Under the pieces are notes generated by a model. That model was not told where the DNA came from. It did not search any database and saw only the letters and a list, made by a program, of their open reading frames with translations. Made by a program: the position numbers and the translations under genes. Positions 11,813 to 64,000 of a stretch of 64,000 bases of DNA are shown here, piece after piece; positions within the stretch are counted from its first letter, which is position 1, and each line of letters starts with the position of its first letter. Location: the NCBI GenBank assembly GCA_002269645.1, contig NIVC01003688.1, positions 1-64,000 on the forward strand, in the 5' to 3' direction. This stretch comes from Macrostomum lignano. Lineage: Eukaryota.

Positions 11813-12983
11813 CTTAATGATGTTGGGCAAGATCTAGTAACTTCTGCAGCCAGTTCAGTTGAGGTTCATTTTACGCGTACGATAAAATCCGTTTCAAAAC
11901 AAATTTATAATATTTCTTACACGAAAGAACCATCCTTACTTTTATAAGATTGCTCAAACCAAATGATGTTCATTCAACTTTTATGTCTTTATTCAAATAA
12001 TTTACAAGCGTAGCTACACAGATAAATATATCAATAGTATACAGTGCTACTAAATTATATGATTTTTCTTTATTACCGCATATTGTTTGTTAAAACTCGT
12101 TTAAAGCCGAAAAATCGATGCTGATAAAAATTATCAAATTTACAAATGACAATTAGAATTTTGTACGCCAGTTAGCATCGAGACACACGCGAAACTTTTC
12201 GAAAAGATGACCGGCTGCGGAGGTAGCGTTCAGGCCCCTGTCTATGGTTATTAATTCCTGGAAAGCTTTTTTCCATTTGGGCCAGGACAATTTGACTGTA
12301 ATAAAGTACATTGACCTAAAGTCAAATTATGTATATGTATTTGTGTATGATTTGTATATATTTGCGTATGGACTTTGTATATGACTTTATTTCCCCTCCC
12401 TTATCTAAGGCTTTGAACTGGATCGGCTCGAAATTCCATATGCCTGAAATTTCTAATGTTAAGAGCTACGTACTATGGCTAAAAAATTTTAGCGGTACTT
12501 TCAACCACATGTGTGTGAATTTTTTTCGAGCGCAAAAAAGTGAAATGTACGAGTTTATGATGCTTTTAAGATTGCGATTACTTTAGCTGTAGCGATTCCT
12601 TCTAATCTATTTTTTACTGAAATTATACTGGAAACTTAGGAAGTAAGAAATAAGTTCTGTAAAAACATCAGTTTTTTCTACATGTTCGAGCCTACATGTA
12701 TATCTTCCGATAGTTTTTTATTTCTAGACGATTTTTATTGTTCATGGTGAATTACATGTACCTATGCGTACCTCATGCATTAGCGCTTTGCAAAAAAAAT
12801 CCTACACGGAACGCAGTTAAAAAAACAGTTGTACGCTCGTATTTTTTGTTCCCGCTAGTGAACAATGTTTGATTTTATTTTCTTCCAAGCAATGCTGCAT
12901 ATGGATCGAGTATCTGCAGTTACATGTATGCTTTTATAAATTCGAATTCCAAGTTTAAAAGGAGCGATATTGTGAAATTTAAA

Positions 12984-13026
12984 CAAGGACCACTACTAGT
13001 AGTGCAGTACTACCCAGTGGTCCTTG
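12984..13026. mobile_element. 43-bp TIR-TIR element or transposon excision scar
   Basis: CAAGGACCACT...AGTGGTCCTTG (11-bp perfect TIR), flanked by 8-bp TSD AATTTAAA at 12976-12983 and 13027-13034. Confidence 0.85.
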
Positions 13027-13259
13027 AATTTAAATCGCTAAAAGCCAACAAAAAATTCCTACTTCGCTCTGCTCTGCAGCCGTTCTTTTATAGTTTAGTT
13101 TACTTTAGTTTATTGTAGTTTTTCATGATAAATACATGCCTACGCGAATATTAAATGATGGATCGAAGTAACTTTTGGGTCCGGATCGCGTGGGAAAACT
13201 CCGGTCTGTCGTACGAACACGTACGGATCTATCATGAACAATATGCTACTAGCTATACG

Positions 13260-13292
13260 CAAGGACCACTGTATATACAATGGTCCAGCTTG
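13260..13292. mobile_element. 33-bp TIR-TIR element or excision scar, same family
   Basis: CAAGGACCACT...TGGTCCAGCTTG, flanked by 8-bp TSD GCTATACG at 13252-13259 and 13293-13300. Confidence 0.8.
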
Positions 13293-14054
13293 GCTATACG
13301 GTACATGTATGAGTATATGCAAACTGTCGACTGAATTGCGAATTTGAGAAATATGAAATGGTGTAACCACAGTTATAATGGCAAAGTACTTTTATTTCAG
13401 TACAGATTCAGCGCAAGCTTCACAGTACGTGATCGAGTTACAGTTTGTAATTTTTTTCAAATTCATACGTGTACATTTCTAGCTGTTTAAACAAGCAGGC
13501 CGGCTAATATACAAATTTACATGTGACTGCATCAATTTTTGAGCGAGACTCTAGTTTATGGAGCATAAATTCGTATACATGTACATGTACATGTTTATGC
13601 TACTTGAATAAAATCTTATAGCACGTACCGCATATCATCACTTCAGGCAATCAAAATCATTCCGCAATTTGATGCTGCAATTATTGATAGGCCGATTTTA
13701 TTCAGCTTGGTTGATCAGATAAATTCAAGCTATTGTGGATACAATTGCAGCTGCATTATGGCTTCATTGTATATATTACAGTGTATATTGGCAACAAATC
13801 AATCAAAAATTTAGTGGCACATCCGGTTTTCGGTAACAGCTGTAGCTATTATATAAGGACGTGGAAATTAAAGCAATTTCATTCGATCACAAAAAACACA
13901 GAAAATTCCAATCATCAGGCCGGTCAGTGGAGTGAAAAAAATTCGAAACATTTTCGGACGATCAAATCGACAAATGAGATTATGAGAAATTGGTCCGTCT
14001 GCTCGCAAAATTATTGCCAATTGTACGTAGAACCATGGACGTAGAATATAGGCA

Positions 14055-16930: not shown

Positions 16931-17231
16931 AGTTACTAACGCAGGGCTTTTTACTGATTTAAATTCTCGCCAGTCTACAAAAACAAAAAATATCATTGAT
17001 TTAATTTGCAAATGTTTTATAATGCAAATCCATTGTTTTAAATTTTATTTCCGGAAAAGTAATGTTTTAAACCATCGAAATTTTTTTCAGGCAAAACTTC
17101 TGCAATTTCCTGATTAAAAAATCTAACATTTTACTCGTACCCGGCCTCCTGCCTCATTGAAGACTTTCCAGTCTGCAGATTTTAATCGTCTGATTAATCT
17201 GAAGGTCAGGAGGCTCTAAAATTGGGGTTTG

Positions 17232-18555
17232 GACGGAGTGCGGTGGGTGCAAGAGTCGGGTCTGAGCGGAGTGAGGGGGTGCAGGAGTCGGGTCTGAGCG
17301 GAGTGAGGGGGTGCAGGAGTGGAGTCTGCGCGGAGTGAGGGGGGTGCAGGAGTCGGGTCTGAGCGGAGTGAGGGGGTGCAGGAGTGGAGTCTGCGCGGAG
17401 TGAGGGGGGTGCAGGAGTCGGGTCTGAGCGGAGTGAGGTGGGTGCAGGAGTGGGGTCTGAGCGGAGTGAGGTGGGTGCAGGAGTGGGGTCTGAGCGGAGT
17501 GAGGGGGTGCAGGAGTCGGGTCTGAGCGGAGTGAGGGGGTGCAGGAGTGGAGTCTGCGCGGAGTGAGGGGGGTGCAGGAGTGGGGTCTGAGCGGAGTGAG
17601 GTGGGTGCAGGAGTGGGGTCTGAGCGGAGTGAGGTGGGTGCAGGAGTGGGGTCTGAGCGGAGTGAGGGGGTGCAGGAGTCGGGTCTGAGCGGAGTGAGGG
17701 GGTGCAGGAGTGGAGTCTGCGCAAAGTGAGGGGGGTGCAGGAGTGGGGTCTGAGCGGAGTGAGGTGGGTGCAGGAGTGGGGTCTGAGCGGAGTGAGGTAG
17801 GTGCAGGAGTGGAGTCTGAGTGGAGTGAGGGGGTGCAGGAGTGGAGTCTGAGCGGAGTGAGGTGGGTGCAGGAGTGGAGTCTGAGTGGAGTGAGGTGGGT
17901 GCAGGAGTGGAGTCTGAGTGGAGTGAGGTGGGTGCAGGAGTGGAGTCTGAGCGGAGTGAGGTGGGTGCAGGAGTGAGGTCTGAGCGGAGTGAGGTGGGTG
18001 CAGGAGTGGGGTCTGTGCGGAGTGAGGTGGGTGCAGGAGTGGAGTCTGAGTGGAGTGAGGGGGTGCAGGAGTGGAGTCTGAGTGGAGTGAGGTGGGTGCA
18101 GGAGTGGGGTCTGAGCGGAGTGAGGTGGGTGCAGGAGTGAGGTCTGAGCGGAGTGAGGTGGGTGCAGGAGTGGAGTCTGAGTGGAGTGAGGGGGTGCAGG
18201 AGTGGAGTCTGAGTGGAGTGAGGTGGGTGCAGGAGTGGAGTCTGAGCGGAGTGAGGTGGGTGCAGGAGTGAGGTCTGAGCGGAGTGAGGTGGGTGCAGGA
18301 GTGGAGTCTGAGTGGAGTGAGGTGGGTGCAGGAGTGGAGTCTGAGCGGAGTGAGGTGGGTGCAGGAGTGAGGTCTGAGCGGAGTGAGGTGGGTGCAGGAG
18401 TGGGGTCTGAGCGGAGTGAGGTGGGTGCAGGAGTGGAGTCTGAGTGGAGTGAGGGGGTGCAGGAGTGGAGTCTGAGCGGAGTGAGGTGGGTGCAGGAGTG
18501 AGGTCTGAGCGGAGTGAGGTGGGTGCAGGAGTGGGGTCTAGCTGGAGTGAGGCTC
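17232..18555. repeat. 32-33 bp G-rich array GGGTGCAGGAGTGGGGTCTGAGCGGAGTGAGGT
   Basis: Direct periodicity. Confidence 0.95.
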
Positions 18556-19294
18556 AGCTTTATGGCTTTAAATCATAAAATGTTTGTAGTGCAAATATTT
18601 TTCTCCAAATAAACAAAAAACTTACTGTAAATAAAATTGAGTTTGTAAAGAAAAGATTAGCACTTTGATTTTTATGATTTCAAGCTAATCCCAAAGCGAA
18701 GAAGAGGTCAAAATCATAGACAGCGAGGAAAAATAGCACATGGCAATAAATCAAACTGTTTCAATGTGCTACGAGTGTAATTAAAGAAGGCGACAGTTTC
18801 TCAATGCAGCCATCCCGCTGATGAAGTGTCACTAGCTATCGGACGCGCGTACAACTAACGATGAGGCAGCCCGCTCTCTGTTTATGCCGGCGTGTTTCTC
18901 ATATGTCTCTTACTTCTATTTTCTCCACTTCAGTGACAAGTGCACGAAATTTAGGCAACTGCGCACAGTGAGAAAAAGCCCCAATACCCAGCTGAGATGG
19001 CGTGGCTATGGGTAGAGCGCCATCTGTTGCCGGTAGAAACAAGCCAATTCCTATCCCATCTTTCGCTGCCTCTGTTAATTTTCTGCTTTTATGTCTGTGC
19101 ACTTTTGTCCAGCTTTTACTTCTCCTCTGAAGCTGCTGACAGATTGACAAGTTTGGCGGGGCACTGCAGGATGTGGCGAGAGATTCTTAATGGAGCAGAA
19201 AGATTTAGAATCTTTCTCTCAAGTTTTTGGTAGTTTGGGGGCATTTCTCAGGGGCTTTTGTTTGATTTTACTGATGGCCTTACCATCTCTAGGG

Positions 19295-20580
19295 GCATAG
19301 GAGAGGGGAGGCAGAGAGGGTGGCAGAGGAGAGGGCAGGGCAGAGGAGAGGGCAGGCCAGAGGGGAGGGGAGGGCAGAGGGAGGGGAGGGCAGAGGAGAG
19401 GGGAGGGCAGAGGAGAGGGGAGGGCAGAGGAGAGGGGAGGGCAGAGGGGAGGGCAGAGGGGAGGGCAGAGGGGATGGGAGGGCAGAGGGCAGGGCAGAGG
19501 AGAGGGGAGGGCAGAGAGGAGGGGAGGGCAGAGAGGAGGGGAGGGCAGAGGGGAGGGGAGGGCAGAGGGCAGGGCAGAGGAGAGGGGAGGGCAGAGAGGA
19601 GGGGAGGGCAGAGGGAGGGGAGGGCAGAGAGGAGGGGAGGGCAGAGAGGAGGGGAGGGCAGAGGGCAGGGCAGAGGAGAGGGGAGGGCAGAGAGGAGGGG
19701 AGGGCAGAGGGCAGGGCAGAGGAGAGGGGAGGGCAGAGAGGAGGGGAGGGCAGAGGGCAGGGCAGAGGAGAGGGGAGGGCAGAGAGGAGGGTAGGGCAGA
19801 AGGGAGGGGAGGGCAGAGAGGAGGGGAGGGCAGAGAGGAGGGGAGGGCAGAGAGGAGGGGAGGGCAGAGAGGAGGGGAGGGCAGAGAGGAGGGGAGGGCA
19901 GAGAGGAGGGGAGGGCAGAGGGTAGGGGAGGCAGAGAGGAGGAGAGGGCAGAGGGGAGGGGAGGGCAGAGAGGAGGGGAGGGCAGAGAGGAGGGGAGGGC
20001 AGAGGGTAGGGGAGGGCAGAGAGGAGGGGAGGGCAGAGAGGAGGGGAGGGCAGAGAGGAGGGGAGGGCAGAGAGGAGGGGAGGGCAGAGAGGAGGGGAGG
20101 GCAGAGAGGAGGGGAGGGCAGAGAGGAGGGGAGGGCAGAGAGGAGGGGAGGGCAGAGAGGAGGGGAGGGCAGAGAGGAGGGGAGGGCAGAGGGGAGGGAG
20201 GGCAGAGAGGAGGGAGGGCAGAGGGGAGGGCAGAGGGGAGGGCAGAGGGGAGGGAAGAGAGGAGGGGAGGGCAGAGGGGAGGGCAGAGGGAGGGCAGAGG
20301 GAGGGCAGAGAGGAGGGGAGGGCAGAGAGGAGGGGAGGGCAGAGGGGAGGGCAGAGGGGAGGGCAGAGGGGAGGGGAGGGCAGAGAGGAGGGGAGGGCAG
20401 AGGGGAGGGCAGAGGGAGGGCAGAGGGGAGGGGAGGGCAGAGAGGAGGGAGGGCAGAGGGGAGGGCAGAGGGGAGGGCAGAGGGAGGGGAGGGCAGAGAG
20501 GAGGGAGGGCAGAGGGGAGGGCAGAGGGGAGGGCAGAGGGGAGGGCAGAGGGGAGGGGAGGGCAGAGAGGAGGGGAGGCG
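19295..20580. repeat. Polypurine array (GGGGAGGGCAGAGAGGA and shorter variants)
   Basis: Almost purely A/G on the plus strand for 1.3 kb. Confidence 0.95.
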
Positions 20581-21112
20581 CTGAACTGTTGCGGACGAAA
20601 GCAGAGACAGCAAGGTCAGCTTCAGAATAATTCGAGTTTCCAGCGCTGTTGCCACGGACACAGCCAGCCAGAAATAAACATCAACCCCCGCCCTTAGGCT
20701 AAGCTGATCGCCCAGTAGCCTGTCATGAAGCCTGTCATGAGCGCATCCGGTTCATTCATCCTTGACCTGTCTGTCTGGTCCATCTTTTAATATTTGCAGA
20801 GTGGTATAAAAGTTATACACAGCGAATACGGTTAACTATATAATGCTCAAGTCTCTCGTGCACTCTTGAAGATATTTTGAAGCAATGTTGTAAGTGGTAG
20901 CGCTTTCATTGCGCATTCAAAATTTTTATCAGTTAAGCAATTTTCATATTTATAAAGTAGCAGTTTATTATTGAAAAGGAATCTATAGTCATTCTATTGA
21001 GTTGATAATGAGTATACTCTCCATTGAATGCATGCAAATTAACAATATAGCCCTGACAATAGTGAGTGATAATAAAAAAATCTTCTTCTTAGCTTTAAAC
21101 TTGCAAGGTCAA

Positions 21113-23474: not shown

Positions 23475-23590
23475 TTAAAGAGTCGCTTCATCTCCGCTGC
23501 CACCGAGAATGGACACAGTCTCGCTTTGACAAAACTCTTCATTGAATTCGGCGGCTAATGGACTCAGAAATTCTCGTTGTTGTTGCACAG

Positions 23591-23627
<37 letters not shown>

Positions 23628-24772
23628 AAGCAGGCGGCGTTGACGTCTGCGCCTCGGTGAGCTGTTAGCAACCTGAGCAGGCGGCACCCTCGACACCAAC
23701 GGCAAGGTGTTGCCATCCAGGTAGCCAGTGAGGGAGTAACTGCCCGAGTTCTGTTGCCGCTCCGACCGGAGGTAGCCTGCGGCCGAGGCCCCGCCCGTCC
23801 GGATGCCGAGCAGCTGCTGGAACGCGCACCGGAACTCTCTCTGATTGAAGCAGTACAGTATGGGATTCAGGCCAGAGTTTAGGTAGCCAATCCAGGTGAT
23901 CAGGTCACGTGCCAGCTGGCCAGGCCGCTGCACTGGCTAGCCGTGAACGGGCAGGCAACGTACATGACAAAGAAGGGCAACCAGCAGACGTAGAAACAGC
24001 CAAGGATCAGGCCGAGCGTCTTCGTGGCTTTGGTCTCGTGCCGGATCTGCCGGCAGGCCAGGCCGCCCTGCTGCGCCCTGATGAGCTCGCACTGGTCGGT
24101 GGCGATCCGGTGCACCCTGGCGTAGGCCAGCGTCATCACCAGCAGCGGCAGGAAGAAAGACGTGCTTGCTGACACCACGGCGTAGGAGCGGTTCACCTCC
24201 ATGCGGCACTGCGGCACCCCGGTGTCTGACGGTTCGGCCGACGCAGCTTCAACTGGTCGCACCAGGCCGGAGAACACCGGGCCGAAGCTCAGACCGATGC
24301 TGACCGTCCAGACCACGCCGACCGAAGCGACAATTCGTCTGGGCTGTACAATCTGGCGATAGCGCAGCGGCTTGTTGACTGCGATGTACCTGTCGAGACT
24401 GATGAGGCACAGGTGCAGGATGCTGGCCGTGCAGCACATGATGTCGCAGGATTGAAAGAATTTGCAGAATAGGTCGCCAAACGGCCAGCACTTCAGGAAC
24501 ACGTAGGCTGTAGACGAGGTCATCACGGTCAGAGCGATAGCAATATCCGCAGTTGCTAAGGACGCCAAGAGATGGAAGCATTTCTGCGAACGCAATCGAC
24601 GAAATATGGCCACGGAGCAGATGACCAGCGAGTTGCCAACCAGGGTCTCAACAATGAGCAGCGTCATGAGCAGCAGGGTCAGCAAGCGAAGCGGCAAGTC
24701 CTGGGAAGTCCATAGGAAAGAGAGGGCGGACTCGGTTGAGGACCCGTTTGAGCAGATCGATAGCGGCGGCAT
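23475..24772 (-). CDS. Intronless class A aminergic GPCR (octopamine/dopamine/adrenergic-like), one frameshift near 23925
   Basis: GN in TM1, LATAD in TM2, CDIMCCTAS (Asp3.32) and DRY in TM3, Ser-rich TM5 (VSASTSFFLP), CWLPFF in TM6. WIGYLNSGLNPILY (TM7) lies in a second frame. The C-tail has a polyQ tract. Confidence 0.92.
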
Positions 24773-25639
24773 CGGCTGTAGCAATTGCTGTGTTGCAGGC
24801 TCGATTTGCAGTCAATCGAAAGCAGAAACCAGCCAGGAGAGAGGATTATTTTCCAGTCTCTCGGATAGGGGATTTGGGAAGCGGACCTCAGTGTCGCTAA
24901 GCTGCGAGCCAAGAAATAGCCGCGGGGGGTTCAATGCTTTCTCTCTGTCCCACTAAACACGAGGGACGGCGACTCAAAAAGGCTTGCCTAGAGGTTCCTC
25001 GCCTCACTGCACTGATCGCACTGTGCTTTAGGGATCTTCTTAGGCGATTTCCCATTGGTTTGTACGGAGAGCTGTTCAAATAGCCGCAGCCAATGATGCT
25101 GGTCAAGCTTCATCGCGCTTGCACAGTTGCTAAGCTCAAATACTCAACTCCGGCCTTCTATACATACAGTGTACGATATTCTGTGGAATGCAACTGATAT
25201 TTCTCTGTCGTTAACAATTTTCATCTAGTTTAAAAAAAATCGAACCACAAGTAATTAATCCATAGACTTTGGCGAAAATACTGGTATACGAGTATACTCG
25301 TATTATCTCATAATCAAGCTGATCCAACAACATACATTTGTTAATGTCAGACAGTCTACCCGAATTGTCAGACAAACTACAGAATTTAAAAACAGTTTTA
25401 CGGAATTCTCAGACTACAAATAATTTTAAAAAATGCCAGGTGTAATTTATCGCGCACGAGCTGTCATTACTTATAAAGATCTGAAGTACCACTGAAGAAA
25501 ATTGCGCTTAGACAAAAATGTAGGAATGACAAGATAGGTCAGAAAAGGAGCCACTTCAGAATTAGACTGTCACCTGATTCAAAAACCTGTAGGACCTGGA
25601 GCTAGTTCATAAGAGTGCATCTGCTCAGTTGCACTGTAT

Positions 25640-43026: not shown

Positions 43027-43298
43027 CATACATGCGCAACCTCCAAAATTCGGTCGGCCATGCGACTTAGTTTTAACAAAAATGCGACGTAGTTTTTGGC
43101 CAAAAATGCAAAATTAACGCAACTGTGGGAAAAAGGGAAGGAGTAACTATGACTGTCTTATTAAGTCAAAATGCCTCGTCAGCTACATAGTACTACTACT
43201 TTGGTATTTTTTCGGGTGGGCATTTTTGCGACTTCCTTGGTTGGCCGCCAAATCGGTCGGCCGGATCGGCCGACTTGGCCGACTGTTGCGCATGTATG
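43027..43298 (+). mobile_element. MITE copy 1 carrying a 28S rRNA fragment (43128-43191)
   Basis: 14-bp perfect TIR CATACATGCGCAAC; 8-bp TSD GTTATAAT at 43019-43026 and 43299-43306; internal GGAGTAACTATGACT...AAATGCCTCGTCA. Confidence 0.92.
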
Positions 43299-44573: not shown

Positions 44574-44857
44574 CATACATGCGCAACCCCCCTGATTTAC
44601 ACTGGCCATGCGACTTACTTTTTGACAAAAAATGCGACTTAGGCCTACCTATGAAAGAAACTCTAAGAGCAGCATTAACGCAATTTTGGGTAAACGGCAG
44701 GAGTAACTATGACTGTCTTATAAGGGCTAAATGCCTCGTCATCTAATTAGTACTACGTCTGTATTCTTTGGGGTGGGCATTTTTGCGACTTACCCCTGGT
44801 CCACCACAATTTACGGTGGCCAGATCGGCCAGGTCGGCCAGCAGTTGCGCATGTATG
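44574..44857 (+). mobile_element. MITE copy 2 carrying a 28S rRNA fragment (44688-44751)
   Basis: Same 14-bp TIR; 8-bp TSD GCGTATAC at 44566-44573 and 44858-44865. The 64-nt segment is 56/64 identical (ungapped) to the recalled conserved eukaryotic 28S helix 69-71 sequence. Confidence 0.93.
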
Positions 44858-52444: not shown

Positions 52445-53305
52445 GGGGACAGGGGTGCTAGAGGAGGACAGAGGTCTAGAGGGGGACAGGGGTGCTAGAG
52501 GGTGACAGGGGTGCTAGAGGGTGACAGGGGTGCTAGAGGGTGACAGGGTTGCTAGAGGGGGATAGAGGTGCTAGAGGGGGAACAAGGGGTGCTAGAGGAG
52601 GACGGGGATGCTAGAGGGGACAGGGGTGCTAGAGGGGGATAGAGGTGCTAGAGGAGGACAGGGGTGCTAGAGGAGGACGGGGATGCTAGAGGGGACAGGG
52701 GTGCTAGAGGGGGATAGAGGTGCTAGAGGAGGACGGGTGCTAGAGGGGGACAGGGGTGCTAGAGGGGGACAGAGGTCTAGAGGGGGACAGGGGTGCTAGA
52801 GGGTGACAGGGGTGCTAGAGGGTGACAGGGTTGCTAGAGGGGATAGAGGTGCTAGAGGGGGAACAAGGGGTGCTAGAGGAGGACGGGGATGCTAGAGGGG
52901 ACAGGGGTGCTAGAGGGGATAGAGGTGCTAGAGGAGGACGGGTGCTAGAGGGGGACAGGGGTGCTAGAGGGGGACAGAGGTCTAGAGGGGGACAGGGGTG
53001 CTAGAGGGTGACAGGGGTGCTAGAGGGTGACAGGGTTGCTAGAGGGGGATAGAGGTGCTAGAGGGGGAACAAGGGGTGCTAGAGGAGGACGGGGATGCTA
53101 GAGGGGACAGGGGTGCTAGAGGGGGATAGAGGTGCTAGAGGAGGACAGGGGTGCTAGAGGAGGACGGGGATGCTAGAGGGGACAGGGGTGCTAGAGGGGG
53201 ATAGAGGTGCTAGAGGAGGACGGGTGCTAGAGGGGGACAGGGGTGCTAGAGGGGGACAGGGGTGCTAGAGGGGGACAGGGGTGCTAGAGGGGGAACAAGG
53301 GGTCA
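52445..53305. repeat. 19-20 bp G-rich array GGGGACAGGGGTGCTAGAG with higher-order repeats
   Basis: Direct periodicity. Confidence 0.94.
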
Positions 53306-53458: not shown

Positions 53459-56400
53459 TTAGACGGAAATCGCACCGGGCGCTTCCGGCTCCGTTCCGGT
53501 GTCGACCAGGTTCCGGTGTGGGTGGCCGAGGTTCACAGCTGATGCTGGGGCTGCTGCTGTAGCAACAGCTGATGGAGCTGCTGAGAAGGTAGAAAATTGA
53601 ATTCTTATTTAGAAGCGCGATATCTCTAATCATTAAAACTTAATTTTTTGCATTTCCACCAGTTCTCTACTTTAACCGGCCTCTTTAAGCTAATCCAGGA
53701 CAATCTTGCATTCAATGAATTACAGTTTTGCTTTTTAAAAAACGCGCCGGGTTTTAAGAACGCGCGCCCCTCATGCTAAAGCCCCTGGTGCGGGCGCCCC
53801 TGGCTAAAGCCCCAAAAGGATGCGCCATCCCCATCAAAATATCCCACAATAGCTAGCTACACCCCTTGCCCTAAGTGAGAATCGAAACGCCATCAACTTA
53901 ATTACCCCGACTATTAAGCGACTCCCTCAATTCAAAATCGACAGCGTCGCCCGAAGCCGACTGGCTGCCGGGAATCGACGACCGCCGGCTGTCCAGAGTG
54001 GCCGGGTAGCCAACCGACGAGCCGGCGTCCCAGCGCCAGTCCAGCTCCCAATCGCTGCTGTCGTCTCCGCTGTCTCCACCACCGTCGTAGCGACGCTGCC
54101 GATGCTTTGTTTTCCACTCGCTGCCGATGTCAATGCCGACATCCGAGGCGGTCAGCGAGGCGTGGACATGCCGCAGCAGCAGGCCGGACATGCCGGCGCC
54201 GATGCCGCTTCTCTTCGACATCGACGGCCGCCGGCGCCGCTGCCAAGTCCACGTCGTCGATCGATCGTCGGGGACAGTGGATCCGCCGTCGCCGCTGAGC
54301 GCTTCGGCCAAGTCGGCGTCGAGCTCCTGGTGCTTCACTTCGCTGGCTAGGCGGTCGCGCATGCCGCAGGCGAGCCGGTCTCTGCGGTCCTCAGACTGGT
54401 CCGAGTCGAAGCTGAACACCGAGGATGAGGCGGCGAAGTCCTCGTCGGCAAAACTTGGCGCCCTGGCCAGCAGTTCGGGACGGATCTTCACGATTAGGAC
54501 GCAGATGTTGCCGCTGGAGCCGTGCGACTGTGGTTGAGTGGAAGAAGGCAGTTAATGTATGATGAAGGATTCTGGTCACAGATTGAGCAGATGTCAAAGT
54601 AATCTCCTGGATAGCTGGATCAGCAGGACGCTACAGTCGGTTTTCTTAAAAATGAGATGAAGGTCGGTGGGGTAATGTGCTCTTTTGGAGGAGGCCGATT
54701 TTTTCGACCGAATTAGTCTATGGCAAAACCTGCTGATCCCTGAGCACGCGCCCGGGTGAGTTGCGCATGCAAGCACACGCTCACACAAGGTGAACACGTT
54801 TCTAGAAAAACTTTAGGAAACAGGTTTTCCAAAAAATACACTAGGATTGTAGCCTGGTAGTTACAGCGTCGGACTCACGACTTGAAGGTCAGGGGTTCGA
54901 TTCCCGATCTCACTGGAACAATTTGTGTCCTTGAGCAAGACGCTTAACTCTGCATTTGCTTCAGTTCACCCAGCTGTAAAATGGGTGCCAGCATTAGCTG
55001 GGGCAATTGAGGGTGTGTGTGGTGGGGGGGGGGGGTTTCACAAACACGAAATTTCATCACAACATCGAAAATTCAAATAGCAACCATTTTCACAAGGTCG
55101 AAATTTCACAACGTAGAAAACTACTGCATAGTTCTTGTTATAATAAGTTTTCGGTGTTGTGAAATTTCGACCTTGTGAAGGCACCCCTGTGTGGCGACCC
55201 CCCAGCAGGGACTGGACTGAACAGCCGTACGCAGCCTTCAGATGCGCCGTGCAATAGCGCATCGGTTGCACATCTGGCCCTATTGGGGCAGGTGTACTAA
55301 AAAAATTTCAGCACAAAGTTTTTTATAGCTCTATTGATATTCATACTGCTTTTCGTTTGTAAAATTTGGATTCTATGTTAATTTTATATCCCACCTACAT
55401 GTACTGTGCCTAGCATGATAAAAATGGCAGGGCTTGACTCATTGAAAAATATTTTATCATGCTTAGCTTATTGACTGTAACAAAAGTGTAACAAAATGAT
55501 AATATTGATTCATAGAACCAAAACGTAGGATATAAGATTAACATAGAATCATAATTTTCTAATGGAAAAGCTTTATAAATATCTATAGAGCAATAAGAAA
55601 GGCAAGTAATACCAAAAGACAAACGTTGGGTCTCCCTCCTATCAAAAGCAATAACAATTTTTGTGCTGAAATTTTAGTCCTTGTGTGTACAGCGGCCAGC
55701 AGTGTGCACTCTCCGTGGCATTGGGGTTGGCACCTTGGAGCTAGCGTGTGCGCTCTTAGCTAGATTTTAAACGCACCTGCGCCAAGTCCACCAGCCGTTT
55801 TGCCGCAGCCACTGGATGTGCGACCTTCAGCACTTCGGCTGCCACCACTTCGTGTCCGACATGCGACCACAGGCCGCGGTTCGCTAGGACGAGGGCGTCG
55901 TCCCACTCTGTGAGGTTGAGCTGAGTCACCTGCGGATCCGGCACCACTACCGGATGAAGGGAGGACCAGCCCAGCATCCTGGTGCACCTGTATGAGGAAG
56001 TATTGTGTGTATAATGTACATGTTTGTGACCAATTAGTGACTTCACAAACTTCTGTAGTTTACTCGTTGGTGAAACTAATAGTTGGTGAACTCACTATAG
56101 TTGGTGAACTCACTATAGTTGGTGAATTCACTGTAGTTAGTGAACTCACTATAGTTGGTGAACTCAATATAGTTAGTGAACTCACTGTAGTTGGTGAACT
56201 CACTGTATTTGGTGAACTCACTGTAGTTGGTGAACTCACTGTATTTGGTGAACTCACTATAGTTGGTGAACTCACTATAGTTGGTGAACTCACTGTAGTT
56301 GGTGAACTCACTGTAGTTGGTGAACTCACTGTATTTGGTGAACTCACTGTAGTTGGTGAACTCACTGTATTTGGTGAACTCACTATAGTTGGTGAACTCA

Positions 56401-59400
56401 CTATAGTTGGTGAACTCACTGTAGTTGGTGAAGTCACTGTATTTGGTGAACTCACTATAGTTGGTGAACTCACTATAGTTGGTGAACTCACTGTAGTTGG
56501 TGAACTCACTGTATTTGGTGAACTCACTATAGTTGGTGAACTCACTATAGTTGGTGAACTCACTATAGTTGGTGAACTCACTGTAGTTGGTGAACTCACT
56601 GTAGTTGGTGAACTCACTGTAGTTGGTGAACTCACTGTAGTTGGTGAACTCACTATAGTTGGTGAACTCACTAATAGTTGGTGAACTCACTATATTTGGT
56701 GAACTATCTGTAGTTGGTGAACTCACTAATAGTTGGTGAACGCTACATAGTTGGTGAACTCACCTGCACTGGCCATTCACGCGGCCATCGTCAGTGACGA
56801 CACCGCCAGCTTTTGTGACTCTGGTTGCTTCGTCACGGTCTCGCTGGGCCAGGAAGCAGCGGGTGAGCCGGCGCCCAACTCCATCTTCAGCTTCCGGATT
56901 CCGCGGTCGCTGAACAAGCAGTGCTTCAACGTCACCTGCATTGGCGGCTGTCACCTGAGGTTTAATGGCAATCGAAGTGAGGCCACGTTGAAAGTACTTT
57001 TTGTCCTTGTTTATCTTTTTATTGGTTTTCTGACTTTATAAGAAATATTTTACGAATTCCATAGGGATTTTGGGTCTTCTACATCGATTATTTTAGAACT
57101 TATAGGGATTTTAGGGATTCTTTTAGGACTTCTATTGGGATTCTTATAGTACTTCTGTAGGGATTCTTTCGGGACTTCTATGGGGATTCCTATGGAACTT
57201 AAATGTGGATTCTTTTGGGATTTCTTTAGGGTGTCCTATGGGACTTCTGTAGGGATTTTTATGAGACTTCTGTAGGCATTCTATTGTGACTTTTTAGGGA
57301 TTCCTATGGGACTTTTGACTGGATTATTGGCTAATTGAAATTTTCTAGGGGTTTTTCAAGACTTCATAACAATTTTATTTGGGACTTTCGAGCAGATTTG
57401 GTTCTTTAGCTACCTAATAAAAATGTACCATTTTCTTAGAAATCCTCATATTTCTTAGAAACGCCCGCACTCGCCTGCCAGTGCCCCGGCCACCGTTTCA
57501 AATGCAGGGCAGCGCAGGCGGCTCCGCGCCGTCTTCCCAGATTGCGCAGTCGCCGATGGCAGGTCAGCAGCGCGCGACGCAGCGCCGCACCTTCTGGCGA
57601 GGCGGCTGGCGCGGCGCCGGAACCAGCGACAACGCCTCGCAGTTCGGCTTTGAAGGCGCGGCAAAAGTCGGCCTGCAGTCGGCGAGCTATCGCGGCGTCG
57701 CCGTCGCCGTCGAACCAAGGACTACTTACTTATAAACGATACTTAAGTAGTCCTTGCGTCGAACATGGCAAACAGGCCGCCGTCGGGCGTCGGGTAGGGC
57801 ATCCGCTTGGCAACTGAGACGCTGATGATGGAGCTCGGCCGGGAGCCGGCGACCTCGGCGAGGCCGAATTGGAACGGCCCAACGCTCCTGACGGAGCCAG
57901 TCGAGCGGCGTCGCTGCGCCGTTTGCAACGGCGTCGTCGGCGGAGACAGCAGCATCAGGGTCGACTCGGCCGAGGACGCGTCGACGGTGTGGATCGGGCT
58001 GCTGCTCCTGCATCGGCGGGGAGGGGTACGTGTAGTTCAGACTGCCTTTTTCTTCTATTAGTAGACAACTAAATATTGTAGGTATTGAACAATCTGCTTC
58101 AATTCCGATGTATTTTTAACCATTTTTACACCCAGCAATACCATAGCAACACCATGGCAACACCATAGAAACACCATAGCAACACCACAGCAATACCATA
58201 GCAAACACCATAGCAACACCATAGCAACCATAGCAACAATATAGTAACACCATAGCAACACTATAGCAACACTGTAGCAACAATATAGCAACACCATAGC
58301 AACACCATAGCAACAATATAGCAACACCATAGCAACCATAGCAACAATATAGTAACACCATAGCAACACTATAGCAACACTGTAGCAACAATATAGCAAC
58401 ACCATAGCAACACCATAGCAGGACATGACTGTAACGAATTTAATTTAATTTTCCGGAGACTTTTAACTATGGCAATTAAAATTTGTTGCTTTCTTTTTCA
58501 ATTTTCGCTAGTGTTATTTCATTTTGCTACTATCAGTAATGGAATAAGTATAACTTAGAAGCGAAGGGCAAAAGAGCAGCTCAGAGGTGAACCCGTCTGA
58601 CTCTTGTCAGTATTGGCGCGCTTGTATGTTGCTCAGGAGTCTGCGGAATGGGCTGATTGCCGTCATCGCTGGCTGTGTGCATGGGGCGAGTGGAAGTTTA
58701 AAGCTTTGTCTAGCAACAAAAAATCTCGTTTAATTCTTTGATGCTATGACAGCTAATTTTAGCGACTTTGAGTTTCCTGAGTTTGATAATCATTTTATAG
58801 CAATTTCGCCACAAAGGAAATCTGGATCATAATTTACCTAAATAGGTATTATGCGAATGAAGTTAAAAGGAAATGAAGGATGTTGGATTTATTGAAGGAT
58901 TCGAATGATTTGATGGATTTTTCTCTCTGTGTGATATGTCGATCGTAGACTTCTTTCTTTGCTGGAGAACGAAAATAATTGCATTTTTAATAATTCTGAC
59001 ATCTGCTTGATTATCTGCTGTTTCGAGTTATAGGCCCCGGTTTGCTTGACGTCACGCATATTGGTGTGTTAGACAGGGAATCACCGGTTAGATATCGAAT
59101 CACCGGTTAGACAGGGGATCATTGGTTAGACAGCGTAATCATTGGTTAGACAGCGTAATCATTGGTTAGACAGCGTAATTATTGGTTAGAGAGCGTAATT
59201 ATTGGTTAGACAGGGTAATCATTGGTTAGACAGGGAATCACCAGTTAGACAGGGAATCACCGATTAGACAAGGAATCACCGGTTAGACAGGGAATCACCG
59301 GTCAGACAGGGAATCACCAGTTAGACAGGGAATCACCGATTAGACAGGGAATCACCAGTTAGACAGGGAATCACCGATTAGGCAAGGAATCACCGGTTAG

Positions 59401-62400
59401 ACAGGGAATCACCAGTTAGACAGGGAATCACCGATTAGACAAGGAATCACCGGTTTCAAACATGGAATCACCGGTTAGACAGGGAATTATCGGTTAGACA
59501 GGGAATCACCGGTTTCAAACATGGAATCCTCGATTAGACAGGGAATCACCGGTTTCAAACATGGAATCACCGGTTAGACAGGGAATTATCGGTTAGACAG
59601 GGAATCACCGGTTTCAAACATGGAATCCTCGATTAGACAGGGAATCACCGGTTAGACAGGGAATCACCGGTTAGACAGGGAATCACCGGTTAGACAGGGA
59701 ATCACCGGTTAGACAGGGAATCACCGGTTAGACAGGGAATCACCGGTTAGACAGGGAATCACCGGTTAGACACGGGAATCTCCGATTAGACAAGGAATCA
59801 CCGGTTTCAAACATGGAATCACCGGTTAGACAGGGAATTATTGGTTAGACAGGGAATCACCGGTTTCAAACATGGAATCCTCGATTAGACAGGGAATCAC
59901 CGGTTTCAAACATGGAATCACTGGTTAGACAGGGAATTATCGGTTAGACAGGGAATCACCGGTTTCAAACATGGAATCCTCGATTAGACAGGGAATCACC
60001 GGTTAGACAGGGAATCACCGGTTAGACAGGGAATCACCGGTTAGACAGAGAATCACCGGTTAGACAGGGAATCACCGGTCAGACACGGGAATCTCCGATT
60101 AGACATGGGAATCACCGGTCAGACACAGGTCCAACCACAGTTTCCCACCTCACGGAAGCCAGGTCCTGCATAGACATGCCCATCTGCTGGTTGCAGGAGA
60201 GGTCCAAGAAGCTGAGCCTGGATTCCATCAGATTGCGCACAGATCCGCTCAGTGTTGAATTGCAGCCAACGTCAAGAGTTCGCAGTCTGGGCGAGTCGCT
60301 GAGGTCCGGCAGTCGCTGCAGGCAGTTGGAGTGAGCCCTGATCGTAACCAGGCGTTCGAGACGAGACAAAGTCGATGGCAGCGTCTTCAGCTGGTTGCCG
60401 GATATGTTCAATTCGCGAAGCTCGCAAAACTGAAGCATTGTTCTTTGATGATGGGGTACGTTTGAATGCTTTTATTTCGTGGCAAGTACATGCACTGTGA
60501 GCGAAGTTAATAAAAAATTCTGACAAGAACAAGAACAGAACTTGCTTTGGGTGCTTCTTTTTATGAGACATTACGCGCTCAAAGTTCATCGGGGCAATTC
60601 TTTTTAACACCCTTCTAATTCCCATCAAGTAAAATTAAAATTTTCTCTCAAACATCAGTCTTATTCCCCTCAAATACTATTTTAATTCGCCTCAAACTCT
60701 ATTCTAATTCCTCTCCAACACCATTCTAATTCCTCTCAAACACCAATTTTAATTCACCTCACATACAATTCTTATTCTCCTCAAGTACCAGTTTAATTCC
60801 CTTCAAATACCATTCCAATTGCCTTCATATACCATTCTAATTCCCCTCAAACAACATTCTAATTCCCTTCAAATACCATTCTAATTCCCCTCAAACAACA
60901 TTCTAATTCCCTTCAAATACCATTCTAATTCCCCTCAAACAACATTCTAATTCCCTTCAAATACCATTCTAATTCCCCTCAAAAAACATTCTAATTCCCT
61001 TCAAATACCATTCTAATTCCCCTCAAAAACATTCTAATTCCCCTCAAATGAGACCATTATAATTCTCCTCAAACACCATTCTAATTCCCCTCAAACAGCG
61101 TTCTAATTCCCCTTAAATACCATTATAATTCTCCTCAAACAGCATTCTAATTCCCCTCAAACAACATTCTAATTCCCCTCAAATCATTATAATTCTCCTC
61201 AAACAGCATTCTAATTCCCCTCAACTTACCATTCTAATTGCCCTCAAACACGATTCTCATTCTCCCTCAAACAGCAATATAATCCCCCTCAAACACCATT
61301 CTAATTCCCCTCAAACACCCTTCTAATTCCCCTCAAATACCATTCTAATTCCCCTCAAACACAATTCGAATCCCGCGGCACACAATGTACTCAAAAGAAG
61401 CCCAGACTCACTCGTCGTTAATCTCCGTGAGCCGGTTAAACGCTAGCAGCAGAGTCCGCAGGCTGCTCCCAAAGTTCTCCGCAAGGAAGCTGACATCTGC
61501 ATCGCTGAATTGGTTGAACGAAGCCGTCAGGACTTGAAGTCGATTGCCGGAATTCCTAAGCGGCAGTTTTGGCAACTCAACGAGCTGATTGTTGGCTAAA
61601 TTCAACTCAACTAGAGCTGGCGTCAGGTGGAACAGAGCCGCTGGTAGCCTAGTTAACTGGTTGCTATGGAGACAGAGCTCTAGCAGCTCAGTCAGACCGT
61701 TGGCAGCCTCGGCTGGCGCAGCTGGCAGCTCGGCTATTCGGTTTCGCTCCAGACGGAGGCTCTGCAACTTGACGCAGCGCCAGATGTCGGCTGGCAGTCG
61801 GCGAATTTCATTGCCGCCGGCGTGCAGTCGGAGGAGGCTGGCTCGGCCAGACGGCCACAAACAGTCGGGCAGGCTGTCAAGGCGGTTGTCACTGACGTCG
61901 AGGCATTCGAGACGCTTCGGTGGCGGCGATATTTTTAGGCTTTGCAGCTCTGCGTTGGCGGGGATCGAGACATTGGCTTGGGGAGGTTCTTTGGAAATTG
62001 TCGATCAGCTTTGGGGAAATCCAGTTTCTCTCTAGTAACCTTGAGGAAAGGCAGTCTCTGTTTAGTGACCTTGAGGTAAGCGAATTCCTTTCCAGTGACC
62101 TTAAGGAAGGCAGTATCTCTTTAGTGACTTTGATATGAATAAAAGCCTATTTTTGTCCAGTGACCTTGAGAAAAGCAAGTTTCTCTTCAGTAACCTTGCG
62201 GAAAGCGAGTCTCTCTCCAGTGACCTTAAGGAAAGACAGTCTCTCTTTAGTGACCTTGAGGAAAGCGAGTCTCTCGAGTAATCTTGCGGAAAGCGAGTCT
62301 CTCGATCCAGTGACATTGAAGAGAGCCAGTTTCTCTCCAGTGACCTTGAGGAAAGCCAGTTTCTCTCCAGTGACCTTGAGGAAAGCCAGTTTCTCTCCAG

Positions 62401-64000
62401 TGACCTTGAGGAAAGCCAGTTTCTCTCAAGTGACCTTGAGGAGAGCCAGTTTTTCTCCAGTGACCTTGGGGATAGCCAGTTTCTCTCCAGTGACCTTGAG
62501 GAAAGCCAGTTTCTCTCCAGTGACCTTGAGGAAAGCCAGTTTCTCTCCAGTGACCTTGAAGAAAGGCAGTCTCTCTCCAGTGACCTTAAGGGAAAGCCTG
62601 TTTTTCTCCAATAATTGGGGAAAGCGAGTCTCTCTCCAGTGACCTTGAGGAAAGCCAGTCTCTTTCTTTCTAAGTGTATTGAATCGTAAAATGTAAGCAA
62701 CAATAGTGTAATTAAGTATGGCTTATAAAAAATACGAGCGTAGTAGCGTTTTAGTCAAAATATATCATTGAGTTAAAATAGTCTATAAAGGATAAAATAT
62801 AGTTCATAGCTCGCACTAAACAGAAAGTACTCAAAACTCACTATTTTCAACCAATAACAGAGTTCTCAGTGCCGTTCCGTTGACGAAAATGTCTGCAAGC
62901 CTGTTCCTGTCACAGGACAGGAATTCCAGATGGGACAGCGGCTGCAAATCCAGCGTCTCGATCTGGTAAATATAGCGGACGGGGGAGAGGTCGGCTCAAA
63001 AATCTAAGCTGACTTTTGAAAATTCTTTTGAACTGTTTTCTAAAAAAATCTAAAAATTCTTGTCTCTGTATCCAGTTAAATTTAGCACACTAATATATGA
63101 GTACTTTCTTGTGAATTCCTGAATTTTCATCAACGAAGAAGAGCTTCGACAAAGAAAGTTAATAATATCTATTTTACTATATTTACGCGCTCGCACATTA
63201 TTTTTCACTTCAAAAAGGTTTTGTTCCTTTGAATAGTTTGCGAAAAGCAAATAAGTTTCTGTCCTTACAGCTAGGCCAAAAGAAATTTCGTATTTTTAAC
63301 TGACAGCAATGTACTGACGTAGCAGATGTAGTTTTATAAAACTTTTTTTGGCCACAAAATCTAGACTAACCAAATCTAATCTAACCCTATCTAATCTGAC
63401 ACACTCTAATCTGACACAATCTAATTTAACTGAATCTAATTTCACCCAATCTAATCGAATCAAGTCTAATCTCTCCCTCCAATCTAATCTAACCAAATCT
63501 ACTATCACCCAATCTAATCTCACCCAATCTAGTCTAATCAAATCGAATCTAACCAAATCGAATCTAACCGAATATAATCTCACCCAATCTAATCTAACCA
63601 TATCTAATCAAATCAATTTTAATCTCTCCCTCCAATCTAATCTAACCAAATCTACTATCACCCAATCTAATATCACCCAATCTAGTCGAATCAAATCTAA
63701 TCTAACCAAATCTAATCTCACCCAATCTAATCTCACCCAATCTATTCTAATCAAATCTAATCTAACCAAATCTTATCTAACCGAATCTAATCTCAACATA
63801 ATCTAATATAATCCAATTTAATATAACAAAATCTAATATAGCCAAATCTAATGTACCGACACCCAATCTAATCTAACATTATCTAATCTACCATGATCTA
63901 ATCTAACCCCTGTCTAATAAAATCTCGAATCCCAACAACTAAAGCTCACCAGATTATCCCTGAGATCCAGGTACACAAGGTGCGTGAGTCCGGCCAGTCC
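53459..64000 (-). CDS. PHLPP: PHLPP-like LRR + PP2C phosphatase, 5' part outside the window. Exons: >64000-63950, 62962-62842, about 61988-61412, 60442-60149, 58007-57475 (interrupted), 56954-56764, 55987-55777, 54527-53906, 53580-53459
   Basis: LRR series (LDLRDNL, LDVSDNRLDSLP, LNISGNQLKTLP, AHSNC) followed by PP2C motifs FGLAEVAG, AMFDG, ANAGD, VVTDDGRVNG, TRMLG, VVPDP, LANRGLW and AAKRLVDLAQSHG, in PHLPP order. Junction phases are consistent once the 49-nt insertion at 57708-57764 is removed. One GC-AG intron (57474-56955). Confidence 0.9.
54844..55305 (+). mobile_element. tRNA-derived CORE-like SINE, copy 2, interrupted by a MITE
   Basis: A box TAGCCTGGTAG, B box GGTTCGATTCC, CORE-like GTGTCCTTGAGCAAGACGCTTAAC...CTGTAAAATGGG. 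The 3' part (CTGTGTGGCGACCCC...CAGATGCGCC...GTTGCACATCTG) matches the copy at 6407-6706. Confidence 0.85.
55024..55186. mobile_element. MULE-like MITE nested in the SINE, related to 16756-16930
   Basis: Ends GGGGTTTCACAAACACGAAATT / AATTTCGACCTTGTGAAGGCACCC; near-duplicated flanks GTGTGTGGT / CTGTGTGGC. Absent from the other SINE copy. Confidence 0.65.
55295..55680. mobile_element. Possible TIR element
   Basis: ACTAAAA..TTTCAGCACAAA / TTTGTGCTGAAATTTTAGT inverted ends; no clear TSD. Confidence 0.4.
56075..56763. repeat. 18-bp array AGTTGGTGAACTCACTGT, about 38 copies, continuous with the PHLPP 5' splice site
   Basis: Direct periodicity; the terminal unit is the real donor CAG|GTGAGTTCACCAACT on the minus strand. 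Confidence 0.95.
57065..57330. repeat. Degenerate GGGATTC/GGGACTTC array (PHLPP intron)
   Basis: Repeated TAGGGATTCTT...GGGACTTCT cores. Confidence 0.7.
57716..57756. mobile_element. 41-bp TIR-TIR element or excision scar inside a PHLPP coding exon
   Basis: 13-bp perfect TIR CAAGGACTACTTA / TAAGTAGTCCTTG; 8-bp TSD CGTCGAAC at 57708-57715 and 57757-57764. Confidence 0.93.
58135..58420. repeat. 11-bp array CCATAGCAACA
   Basis: Direct periodicity. Confidence 0.92.
59070..60125. repeat. 19-bp array GGGAATCACCGGTTAGACA
   Basis: Direct periodicity with higher-order blocks. Confidence 0.95.
60690..61365. repeat. About 22-bp array CATTCTAATTCCCCTCAAACAC
   Basis: Direct periodicity. Confidence 0.92.
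62030..62660. repeat. 30-bp array CCAGTGACCTTGAGGAAAGCCAGTTTCTCT
   Basis: Direct periodicity. Confidence 0.93.
63360..63910. repeat. ATCTA/AATCT-based low-complexity array
   Basis: Repeated CAATCTAATCT(AACC) units. Confidence 0.88.

Follow-up and report, generated by a model that had tools for sequence, protein, structure and literature searches.

A probable transposon excision scar in the catalytic domain of one copy of a PHLPP-like phosphatase gene of Macrostomum lignano

Introduction

The ends of hAT transposons carry the motif YARNG, and their insertions prefer targets of the form nTnnnnAn. Abortive gap repair can leave only the ends of a transposon at a site, and Ds and dSpm elements inserted in maize exons are spliced out as pseudo-introns, a removal shown by cDNA sequencing. 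P elements make 8-bp target-site duplications, are released by cuts staggered by 17 nt and insert again nearby (PMC7776569), and the zebrafish P-like element Pdre2 is bounded by terminal inverted repeats (TIRs) of 13 bp (PMC10983969). Some introner families recruit a 5' splice site from the target-site duplication, supply a 3' site of their own and add a few codons (bioRxiv 10.1101/2022.06.06.494994). The present report compares with these systems a 41-bp palindromic element that interrupts the PP2C domain of a PHLPP-like phosphatase gene of the flatworm Macrostomum lignano (assembly GCA_002269645.1), within a stretch of 64,000 nucleotides (contig NIVC01003688.1, positions 1 to 64,000 of the forward strand) that is referred to below as the window.

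Splice sites of M. lignano follow the consensus GT[G/A]AG and CAG (PMC8629364), and flatworms, this species included, have micro-introns shorter than 75 nt (around 37-90 nt in flatworms) with splice sites nearer the consensus than those of other introns (PMC6530080). M. lignano is a hidden polyploid (PMC10468722), and the assembly of its DV1 line, which has extra chromosomes, contains 180 Mb of duplicated blocks at an identity of at least 95% (PMC5730564). A sequence-only reading of the window had proposed that the element marks either a fresh null allele of the phosphatase gene or an incipient introner-like intron. The findings described here indicate that, most likely, it marks the recent and ordinary knockout of one redundant copy of a gene rather than the birth of an intron.

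Results

A 41-bp palindromic element with an 8-bp target-site duplication

The element lies within an exon of the phosphatase gene, which is read from the minus strand. In window coordinates, the features of the site are as follows.

57716 to 57756, no strand assigned: 41-bp palindromic element, read as a transposon remnant, CAAGGACTACTTAAGTATCG-T-TTATAAGTAAGTAGTCCTTG on the gene strand, with two end-stubs of about 20 nt placed head to head
57744 to 57756, minus strand: 5' TIR in gene orientation, CAAGGACTACTTA, complementary to 57716-57728 at 13 of 13 positions
57716 to 57728, minus strand: 3' TIR in gene orientation, TAAGTAGTCCTTG, which holds the AGs of the candidate cryptic acceptors considered below
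57757 to 57764, minus strand: upstream copy of the 8-bp target-site duplication, GTTCGACG, which encodes (M)FD-G and begins with GT
57708 to 57715, minus strand: downstream copy of the target-site duplication, GTTCGACG
57743 to 57745, minus strand: premature in-frame TAA introduced by the insert (…FD ARTT*)

In minus-strand orientation, the sequence across the site is GCCAT-GTTCGACG-(CAAGGACTACTTA AGTATCGTTTATAAG TAAGTAGTCCTTG)-GTTCGACG-GCGACGGC or, divided into codons, …GGC CTG TTT GCC ATG TTC GAC G / CAAGGACTACTTAAGTATCGTTTATAAGTAAGTAGTCCTTG / GTTCGACG GC GAC GGC…, the two copies of the duplication being identical at all eight positions. The net gain from the insertion, comprising the element and one copy of the duplication, is 49 nt. 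Deletion of this length restores …GGLFAMFDGDGDAAIARRLQ… together with the remainder of the exon, the single open frame then being …PYPTPDGGLFAMFDGDGDAAIARRLQADF…; as assembled, the frame reads FD-ARTT and stops, after four codons, at the TAA. The sequence-only reading, which had described a 41-bp palindromic element that splits the FDG motif with an 8-bp target-site duplication, a 49-nt removal that restores motif and frame, and an in-frame TAA within four codons (here at 57745-57743), was thus borne out on the minus-strand sequence.

The GC content of the element is 34% as opposed to 70% for the exon and, as RNA, the 41-nt element forms a hairpin of -17.9 kcal/mol (z = -7.1). By arithmetic estimate, a 13-bp inverted repeat with an 8-bp flanking repeat is expected by chance about 4e-6 times per 64 kb, and a scan of the window for inverted repeats with flanking repeats returned only the 41-bp element, a relative of it and one other MITE (miniature inverted-repeat transposable element) family. 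With TIRs, a target-site duplication and, as described below, an empty homologous site, the element fits a class II (cut-and-paste, TIR) transposon insertion or remnant. Identification as a hairpin RNA gene or mirtron was rejected because the hairpin is only 41 nt long and matched no RNA family; an Rfam scan around the insertion site gave nothing relevant. A separate, short and near-perfect inverted repeat (TTTCTTAGAAAT / ATTTCTTAGAAA, 6-nt loop) was noted at 57432-57461, an intronic position some 15 nt downstream of the insert-bearing exon, with no flanking duplication seen.

The interrupted gene encodes a PHLPP-like phosphatase

The exons of the gene lie as follows.

53904 to 62962, minus strand: part inside the window of the PHLPP-like gene BOX15_Mlig030961g1
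about 62843 to 62962, 61411 to 61950 and 60151 to 60450, minus strand: LRR exons
57475 to 58007, 56764 to 56954 and 55777 to 55987, minus strand: PP2C exons
57475 to 58007, minus strand: insert-bearing exon (exon A), of 533 nt in the assembly and 484 nt once the insertion is taken out
53904 to 54530, minus strand: C-terminal exon

The minus-strand exons gave Pfam matches to LRR_4/LRR_8 and PP2C, i.e., the order expected of a PHLPP protein, in which an LRR region is followed by a PP2C (PPM) domain, and LRR and PP2C matches were also precomputed on the whole product. With regard to the N-terminal domains of PHLPP, the full-length sister copy described below has an RA_3 match and no PH match on record. 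The assignment to PHLPP by the sequence-only reading is supported by the LRR and PP2C domains found here and by the presence of RA, LRR and PP2C in that sister copy. The linker is encoded in exon A, together with the N-terminal half of the PP2C domain, in which the metal-binding motif FDG(D/H)G lies. In alignments of the repaired domain with solved PP2C structures (PDB), …FAMFDGDGD… lay opposite …FYGVFDGHG… and …FFGVYDGHGG…. Since FDG thus aligns with the FDGHG or YDGHG of these structures, the insert splits the Asp and Gly of the metal-binding signature.

Two further observations concern the introns of this gene. The insert-bearing exon apparently ends in a GC donor (CAG/GCGAGT, 57469-57474, minus strand), which gives the sole in-frame join to the acceptor cag/GTGACA at 56954/56955; a GT donor in its place would call for another acceptor and shorten the product by one residue. 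Nearly every intron is filled with minisatellites (at 56079-56763, 52445-53294, 58134-58420, 59068-60125, 60606-61371 and 62011-62663) that have units of 11-30 nt in 20-55 copies. The 18-nt array after exon B starts at the splice donor, and each unit of it therefore repeats the donor sequence GTGAGT.

The homologous site is empty in the sister copy

A sister copy of the gene, roughly 98-99% identical to the insert-bearing copy, lies on contig NIVC01000861.1 (locus L006). Its protein (P0049 = PAA75793.1, BOX15_Mlig009093g1, 1420 aa; RA, LRR and PP2C domains) is the cluster mate of the protein deposited for the insert-bearing copy (P0048). At the homologous site, L006 reads …CTGTTTGCCATGTTCGACGGCGACGGCGAC… (core GCCATGTTCGACGGCGAC; also …TTTGCCATGTTCGACGGCGACGGC…), with the target 8-mer present once and no insert. 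L006 is collinear with the contig record that includes the window (L005, NIVC01003688.1), and the alignment blocks break exactly at the element, overlapping by the 8 nt of the duplication. A paralog with 45% identity (P0004, locus L002) likewise has an uninterrupted GTG TTC GAC GGT, with GTTCGACG present once at the same codon. Because the site is uninterrupted both in the sister copy and in this paralog, the insertion is specific to one copy and later than the duplication; i.e., it is a genuine transposition into one copy only, after the gene copies had diverged. Single-nucleotide differences between the copies flank the site, about 75 nt upstream of the insert (CCCGGCC here, CCCAGCC in the sister copy; G versus A) and about 45 nt downstream of it (GCAGGCCGAC here, GCAGGCGGAC in the sister copy; C versus G).

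Over 3027 exon nucleotides, the proportions of synonymous (pS) and nonsynonymous (pN) differences between the sister copies were 0.040 and 0.008, respectively. The ratio pN/pS of 0.20 indicates that, through most of the time since they separated, purifying selection acted on both copies and hence that the lesion is recent, which also fits the perfect TIRs and the perfect duplication. A search for the homeologous block with the neighboring SR-protein gene considered two candidates and gave no matches. Two other ideas were rejected. One was a ciliate-like internal eliminated sequence (IES), or programmed DNA elimination, since the gene is metazoan and the insert is just missing from the sister copy. 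The other was that a CAAGGAC…GTCCTTG pair within a sister-copy intron (L006 29058-29224) belongs to the family of the element; its resemblance to the termini is superficial, as it contains a tRNA-like GGGAATCGAACCC stretch, possibly that of a short interspersed element.

A rival reading is that the insert is polymorphic, or an artefact of assembly or haplotype, most or all chromosomes with this gene copy lacking it and the expressed allele being intact. Consistent with such a reading, the transcript-based annotation (see below) lacks the 49 nt, the sequenced DNA was that of a pool of worms whose line has extra chromosomes (PMC5730564), and a 1-nt frameshift in a receptor gene elsewhere in the window might reflect an error of assembly. 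Against it, perfect TIRs together with an exact 8-bp target duplication mark transposition rather than mis-assembly, Illumina and RNA-seq reads were used to polish the assembly, and related elements occur elsewhere. Polymorphism of a real insertion would be compatible with a knockout of this copy; only a pure artefact would compete with it, and this we regard as extremely improbable.

A second lesion in the same copy

Comparison of the two contigs revealed a second lesion of the insert-bearing copy, outside the window. L005 lacks a segment of 1.46 kb (L006 11029-12492); the junction falls at about 9007/9021 of L005 (region about 8950-9025), corresponding to position 71.0 kb or so of NIVC01003688.1. 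The deletion takes most of exon 2, equivalent to approximately amino acids 62-241 of P0049, within the N-terminal region that contains the RA_3 match, and the frame past the deletion reaches a stop (…RRRTARRSDIK*). Loss of most of exon 2 fits the fact that the deposited model of the insert-bearing copy begins only at Met317 of the sister protein.

The stop created by the insert lies within the first of the PP2C exons, at least three introns being located downstream of it. A truncated product without nearly all of the catalytic domain is expected, and nonsense-mediated decay of the mRNA is likely. The insert-bearing copy is therefore most likely a null. Since the genome is that of a hidden polyploid with an intact sister copy, loss of one copy is expected to be tolerated. 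The proposal of a fresh null allele caused by an element with TIRs and a target-site duplication is well supported by the empty site, the perfect repeats, the pN/pS of about 0.2 and the second lesion.

Splice sites available to the insert

An active phosphatase could still be produced from this copy if the insert were removed from its own RNA, either as 49 nt, perhaps guided by the hairpin, in which the two 8-nt repeats would come close to each other, or as a shorter micro-intron, in which case the scar would have given birth to an intron. The 8-nt repeat allows the 49-nt deletion to be placed in nine equivalent registers. None of the nine has GT-AG, GC-AG or AT-AC ends; GT..TG and GC..AC, the two exact non-canonical excisions pointed out by the sequence-only reading, are among them. 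Its further statement that no canonical GT-AG or GC-AG pair gives a stop-free, in-frame product was wrong, as two GT-AG pairs that do so start from the GT of the upstream duplication.

57722 to 57764, minus strand: candidate cryptic GT-AG micro-intron (hypothetical), 43 nt; a 40-nt variant ends at 57725

The 43-nt pair (cat/GTTCGA...GTAAGTAG/tccttg) would give LFA-IPW-FDGDGD, with Met replaced by Ile-Pro-Trp, and the 40-nt pair (acceptor ...ATAAGTAAG/tagtcc) would give LFA-ISPW-FDGDGD, with Met replaced by Ile-Ser-Pro-Trp. Both options retain FDG, which is then coded by the downstream copy of the duplication. Removal from RNA is also in keeping with the existence of introners that have a duplication-derived 5' site (bioRxiv 10.1101/2022.06.06.494994), with the length of flatworm micro-introns (PMC6530080) and with the intact state of the other exons of this copy.

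The quality of the sites argues otherwise. The donor GTTCGA and the acceptors TAG and AAG mismatch the M. lignano consensus (PMC8629364), both sites being weak, and they also depart from the other sites placed in this gene, at which donors start with GTG (GTGAG, GTGCG, GTGGG), apart from the one apparent GCGAGT, and acceptors end in CAG. Thus, the candidates resemble flatworm micro-introns in length and lack the near-consensus splice sites that distinguish these from other introns (PMC6530080). In addition, the candidate acceptor is inside the 13-bp stem of the hairpin, the same copy carries a second truncating lesion, and other members of the family are not exonic. Near-identical introns in unrelated genes, the hallmark of introners, were not found in a sample of about 140 kb, the two other copies in the window being non-coding. 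The suggestion of an incipient introner-like intron is therefore unsupported, given a family that has only its termini in common, relatives outside genes, 49-nt registers without canonical ends and weak GT-AG sites. An active phosphatase made by removal of the insert from RNA is, in our estimation, quite unlikely, and RNA-level rescue of the insert-bearing copy in any form would be highly improbable.

The intact GenBank protein

The point most favorable to removal of the insert from RNA is the protein on record. A word-indexed search of proteins had pointed to M. lignano and, in an exhaustive HMMER search, the 80 residues encoded just past the insert in the downstream direction matched one protein, P0048 = PAA50236.1 (BOX15_Mlig030961g1), at 100% identity. 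Its locus, L005, is the contig of the window itself (NIVC01003688.1, GCA_002269645.1; window 43459-64000 corresponds to L005 36574-16033 with 0 mismatches). PAA50236.1 nevertheless reads …GGLFAMFDGDGD… (AMFDGDGD uninterrupted) despite the insert in its own contig, as does PAA75793.1 through the motif of exon A. Because the protein is intact while the contig carries the insert, the annotated coding sequence skips exactly 49 nt.

The published annotation was built in steps that would permit such a gap to be drawn from transcripts of another copy. A de novo transcriptome was placed by BLAT (minId 0.8; globalNearBest 0.01, i.e., within 1% of the best match), reads were mapped by STAR with up to 1000 multi-mappings, and models were assembled by StringTie and TACO, after which proteins were read from the genome. 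Since cross-mapping in this pipeline could produce the 49-nt gap, intact PAA50236.1 is no evidence of splicing, and its use as proof of splicing was rejected. Possible sources of the gap are transcripts of the intact sister copy, a chimeric de novo contig and an unassembled empty allele; in each case, translation from the genome would keep the residues of the insert-bearing copy. The annotated 49-nt intron is thus probably an artefact of transcripts projected from the intact copy or an empty allele. Gene models from an older assembly are without the exon, which P0001 skips, P0002 stops before and P0005 bypasses by starting at the first Met after it. Exact look-ups of these UniRef-only models (P0001, P0002 and P0005) and of two open reading frames (ORFs) of the window found nothing on record.

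Related micro-elements

Three further elements resemble the 41-bp element, two in the window and one on a metagenome contig (locus L001).

12984 to 13026: second family member (E1), 43 bp, CAAGGACCACTACTAGTAGTGCAGTACTACCCAGTGGTCCTTG, ends CAAGGACCACT…AGTGGTCCTTG, with an 8-bp duplication, AATTTAAA, at 12976-12983 and 13027-13034
13260 to 13292: third family member (E2), 33 bp, CAAGGACCACTGTATATACAATGGTCCAGCTTG, irregular at its right end, with an 8-bp duplication, GCTATACG, at 13252-13259 and 13293-13300
contig Ga0075521_10027727, 1077 to 1116 and 1856 to 1895: L001 element, 40 bp, 14-nt termini CAAGGACTACTTAA…TTAAGTAGTCCTTG, flanked by GCCTGTG (7 bp, exact)

The terminus CAAGGACYACT is common to the 41-bp element, E1 and E2, and the TIRs of E1 match at 11 of 11 positions. 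This terminus occurs exactly five times in the window, compared with about 0.06 occurrences expected by chance (arithmetic estimate); in shuffled sequence, where one mismatch was allowed, the mean was 1.9 and five of 100 shuffles reached five. E1 and E2 are 234 nt apart in AT-rich DNA without an ORF of at least 110 aa. The termini of the L001 element are identical to those of the 41-bp element over 14 bp, for which about 0.003 chance matches were estimated across the whole collection. The L001 element is present twice, within a larger duplicated segment of a repeat-rich eukaryotic contig, and comparison of this contig with M. lignano DNA showed no similarity beyond the element. Judging from these termini, the micro-element family or a close relative of it exists outside the M. 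lignano assembly as well. The L001 contig also contains a possible reverse-transcriptase fragment, as judged by eye. Matches of the degenerate termini on two viral contigs (L003 and L004) were rejected, as they amounted to one phage inverted repeat with no flanking duplication in about the number expected by chance, and a scan of prokaryotic genomes gave no match.

In an alignment of five element copies, conservation was confined to the termini; the interiors were unrelated and the lengths fell close together, at 33-43 bp. The anatomy of each element is compatible with a pair of end-stubs (16-21 nt) placed head to head, and all fold as hairpins. The many copies, homogeneous along their full length, that characterize a MITE family were thus not seen, only the termini being conserved. 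For comparison, a genuine MITE pair in the window (43027-43298 and 44574-44857; 272 and 284 bp) is 85% identical throughout. The TIR of this pair, CATACATGCGCAAC, which is accompanied by 8-bp duplications (GTTATAAT and GCGTATAC), resembles the 13-bp TIR CATACCTGTCAAC of zebrafish Pdre2.

Since the interiors are unrelated, excision scars fit these elements better than does a copying family of MITEs or introners. A rival reading is that the 41-bp unit is an ultra-short MITE that was inserted as such, mobilized in trans by a transposase needing only about 13-20 bp at each end. In agreement with this, four independent elements (33, 40, 41 and 43 bp) have the same termini and their own flanking duplications, all four fold as hairpins, and no longer element with these termini was found in about 140 kb of M. 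lignano DNA. Copy-amplified MITEs, however, have common interiors, which are unrelated here among all independent copies, and we know of no MITE as short as 33-43 bp. Each element may be viewed as two stubs of about 16-21 nt, head to head, as after repair of a staggered cut, and the spacing of only 234 nt between E1 and E2 suggests that one element hopped locally. On balance, the mobile ultra-short MITE appears doubtful.

With regard to superfamily, CAAGG fits the YARNG end of hAT elements by inspection, and a duplication of 8 bp is likewise in keeping with hAT. The length of the duplication and the stub-pair anatomy fit the P superfamily, which makes duplications of 7-8 bp and for which no transposase was found.

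Other features of the window

A single-exon gene for an amine-receptor-like G protein-coupled receptor (23475-24784, minus strand) has two overlapping frames near 23900-23935 and needs a 1-nt frameshift between …PFTASQC… and …DLITWIGYLNSGLNPILY…; the alternatives are a pseudogene and an assembly indel. The region 17000-21000 (about 4 kb, 53-64% GC, with a GC skew of an extreme +0.5 to +0.64) contains long Pro/Ser/Leu-rich and Gly/Arg/Glu-rich repeat ORFs and looks satellite-like rather than like a gene.

Discussion

The explanation that we consider probable is an excision scar that knocked out one homeolog of a PHLPP-like phosphatase gene. According to this explanation, a cut-and-paste transposon that makes 8-bp duplications (termini CAAGGACYACT…; hAT-like or P-like) would have inserted at GTTCGACG, a target that spans the Asp-Gly of FDG, in one of two diverged homeologs of an RA-LRR-PP2C phosphatase gene. 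The element would later have been excised and the break repaired with about 20 nt of each end kept and both copies of the duplication retained. Retention of the stubs may have followed from cutting with a long stagger, as happens in P elements, or from abortive gap repair. In the mRNA, the frame would shift and reach a stop after four codons, before the larger part of the PP2C domain and with at least three introns still to follow. Such a null copy would be tolerated in a hidden-polyploid genome with the sister copy intact, the same copy also having lost most of exon 2, and intact PAA50236.1 would represent transcripts of the intact copy, or of an empty allele, projected onto the contig.

Several points weigh against this explanation. 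No longer or autonomous element with these termini was found in about 140 kb of M. lignano DNA (the window, L002, L005 and L006), a finding that bears directly on the excision-scar origin, which like the superfamily is deduced from anatomy. Excision by hAT transposases is normally by a flush cut, after which no stub of a TIR stays behind, and the hAT target preference nTnnnnAn is not fully matched on one strand by any of GTTCGACG, AATTTAAA and GCTATACG (by inspection, n = 3). The family may be P-like or hAT-like, since CAAGG also fits a hAT end. Apart from the two lesions, all exons of the insert-bearing copy are open, as they would be in a gene that is still functional. Finally, annotation based on transcripts implies that some RNA without the 49 nt, from whichever copy or allele, aligned here, and an intron of 40-43 nt would be physically possible given the micro-introns of flatworms (PMC6530080).

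If the 49 (or 43 or 40) nt were truly removed from the copy's own transcripts, an excision scar would have turned into a working micro-intron in the catalytic core of a phosphatase, an outcome that we judge very unlikely. Exact removal of 49 nt would then involve non-canonical boundaries juxtaposed by a hairpin, and the CAAGGACYACT stub family could be a source of new flatworm micro-introns; the locus would be a rare case of intron birth in an animal caught in progress.

An excision scar in one gene copy is a known kind of event, and its wider interest lies in a pitfall of annotation and in an apparently abundant family of stubs. PAA50236.1 displays a catalytic motif that the DNA encodes only with a non-canonical 49-nt intron. 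Annotation by projection of transcripts in a highly duplicated genome can thus hide null copies, which matters for the design of knock-out and RNA interference experiments. The locus is also a clean example of the decay of a redundant copy after genome duplication in M. lignano, one homeolog having been damaged twice and the other being intact. The occurrence of three end-stub elements of one family in 64 kb suggests a very active cut-and-paste transposon, and an active family of this kind would be relevant to transposon biology and might also be useful for transgenesis tools.

Comparison with known systems

The IESs of ciliates resemble the insert as short, AT-rich sequences in coding exons that are bounded by a direct repeat and whose removal with one repeat restores the frame. 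The insert differs in belonging to a metazoan without known IES-type elimination and in being flanked by a transposon duplication rather than by TA or pointer repeats. Like MITEs, the elements described here are non-coding, have TIRs and target duplications, are present in several copies and form hairpins. Unlike MITEs, they have only about 11-14 terminal nucleotides in common and, at 33-43 bp, are far shorter than those described.

With introners (Micromonas, Aureococcus, Symbiodinium and others), the insert shares the arrangement of an element with TIRs and a target-site duplication in a coding exon; a 5' site could derive from the duplication and a 3' site from the element, a few codons being added, formally as in described cases. 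In contrast with introners, near-identical introns in unrelated genes were not found in the roughly 140 kb covered, the relatives are non-genic and the splice sites are weak. As for maize Ds and dSpm, transposon ends in an exon offer cryptic sites and removal can partly restore the frame, which at this locus is a formal possibility only.

With hAT elements (Ac/Ds and their internally deleted derivatives), the family shares the 8-bp duplication, short TIRs and the CAAGG end. It differs in that hAT excision is normally flush, with the hairpin formed on the flank and no TIR left, in targets that do not fully fit nTnnnnAn and in that no hAT transposase was found. The stubs here, at up to about 20-21 nt, are longer than the 17-nt stagger of the Drosophila P element, CAAGG… is not known as the terminus of any P element, and neither a THAP9-like transposase nor a full-length element was found. 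The excision footprints of P-type elements (Drosophila P; zebrafish Pdre/THAP9) are nonetheless like the scar in that both copies of an 8-bp duplication are kept around TIR stubs that stand head to head, and local re-insertion of such elements fits the spacing of E1 and E2.

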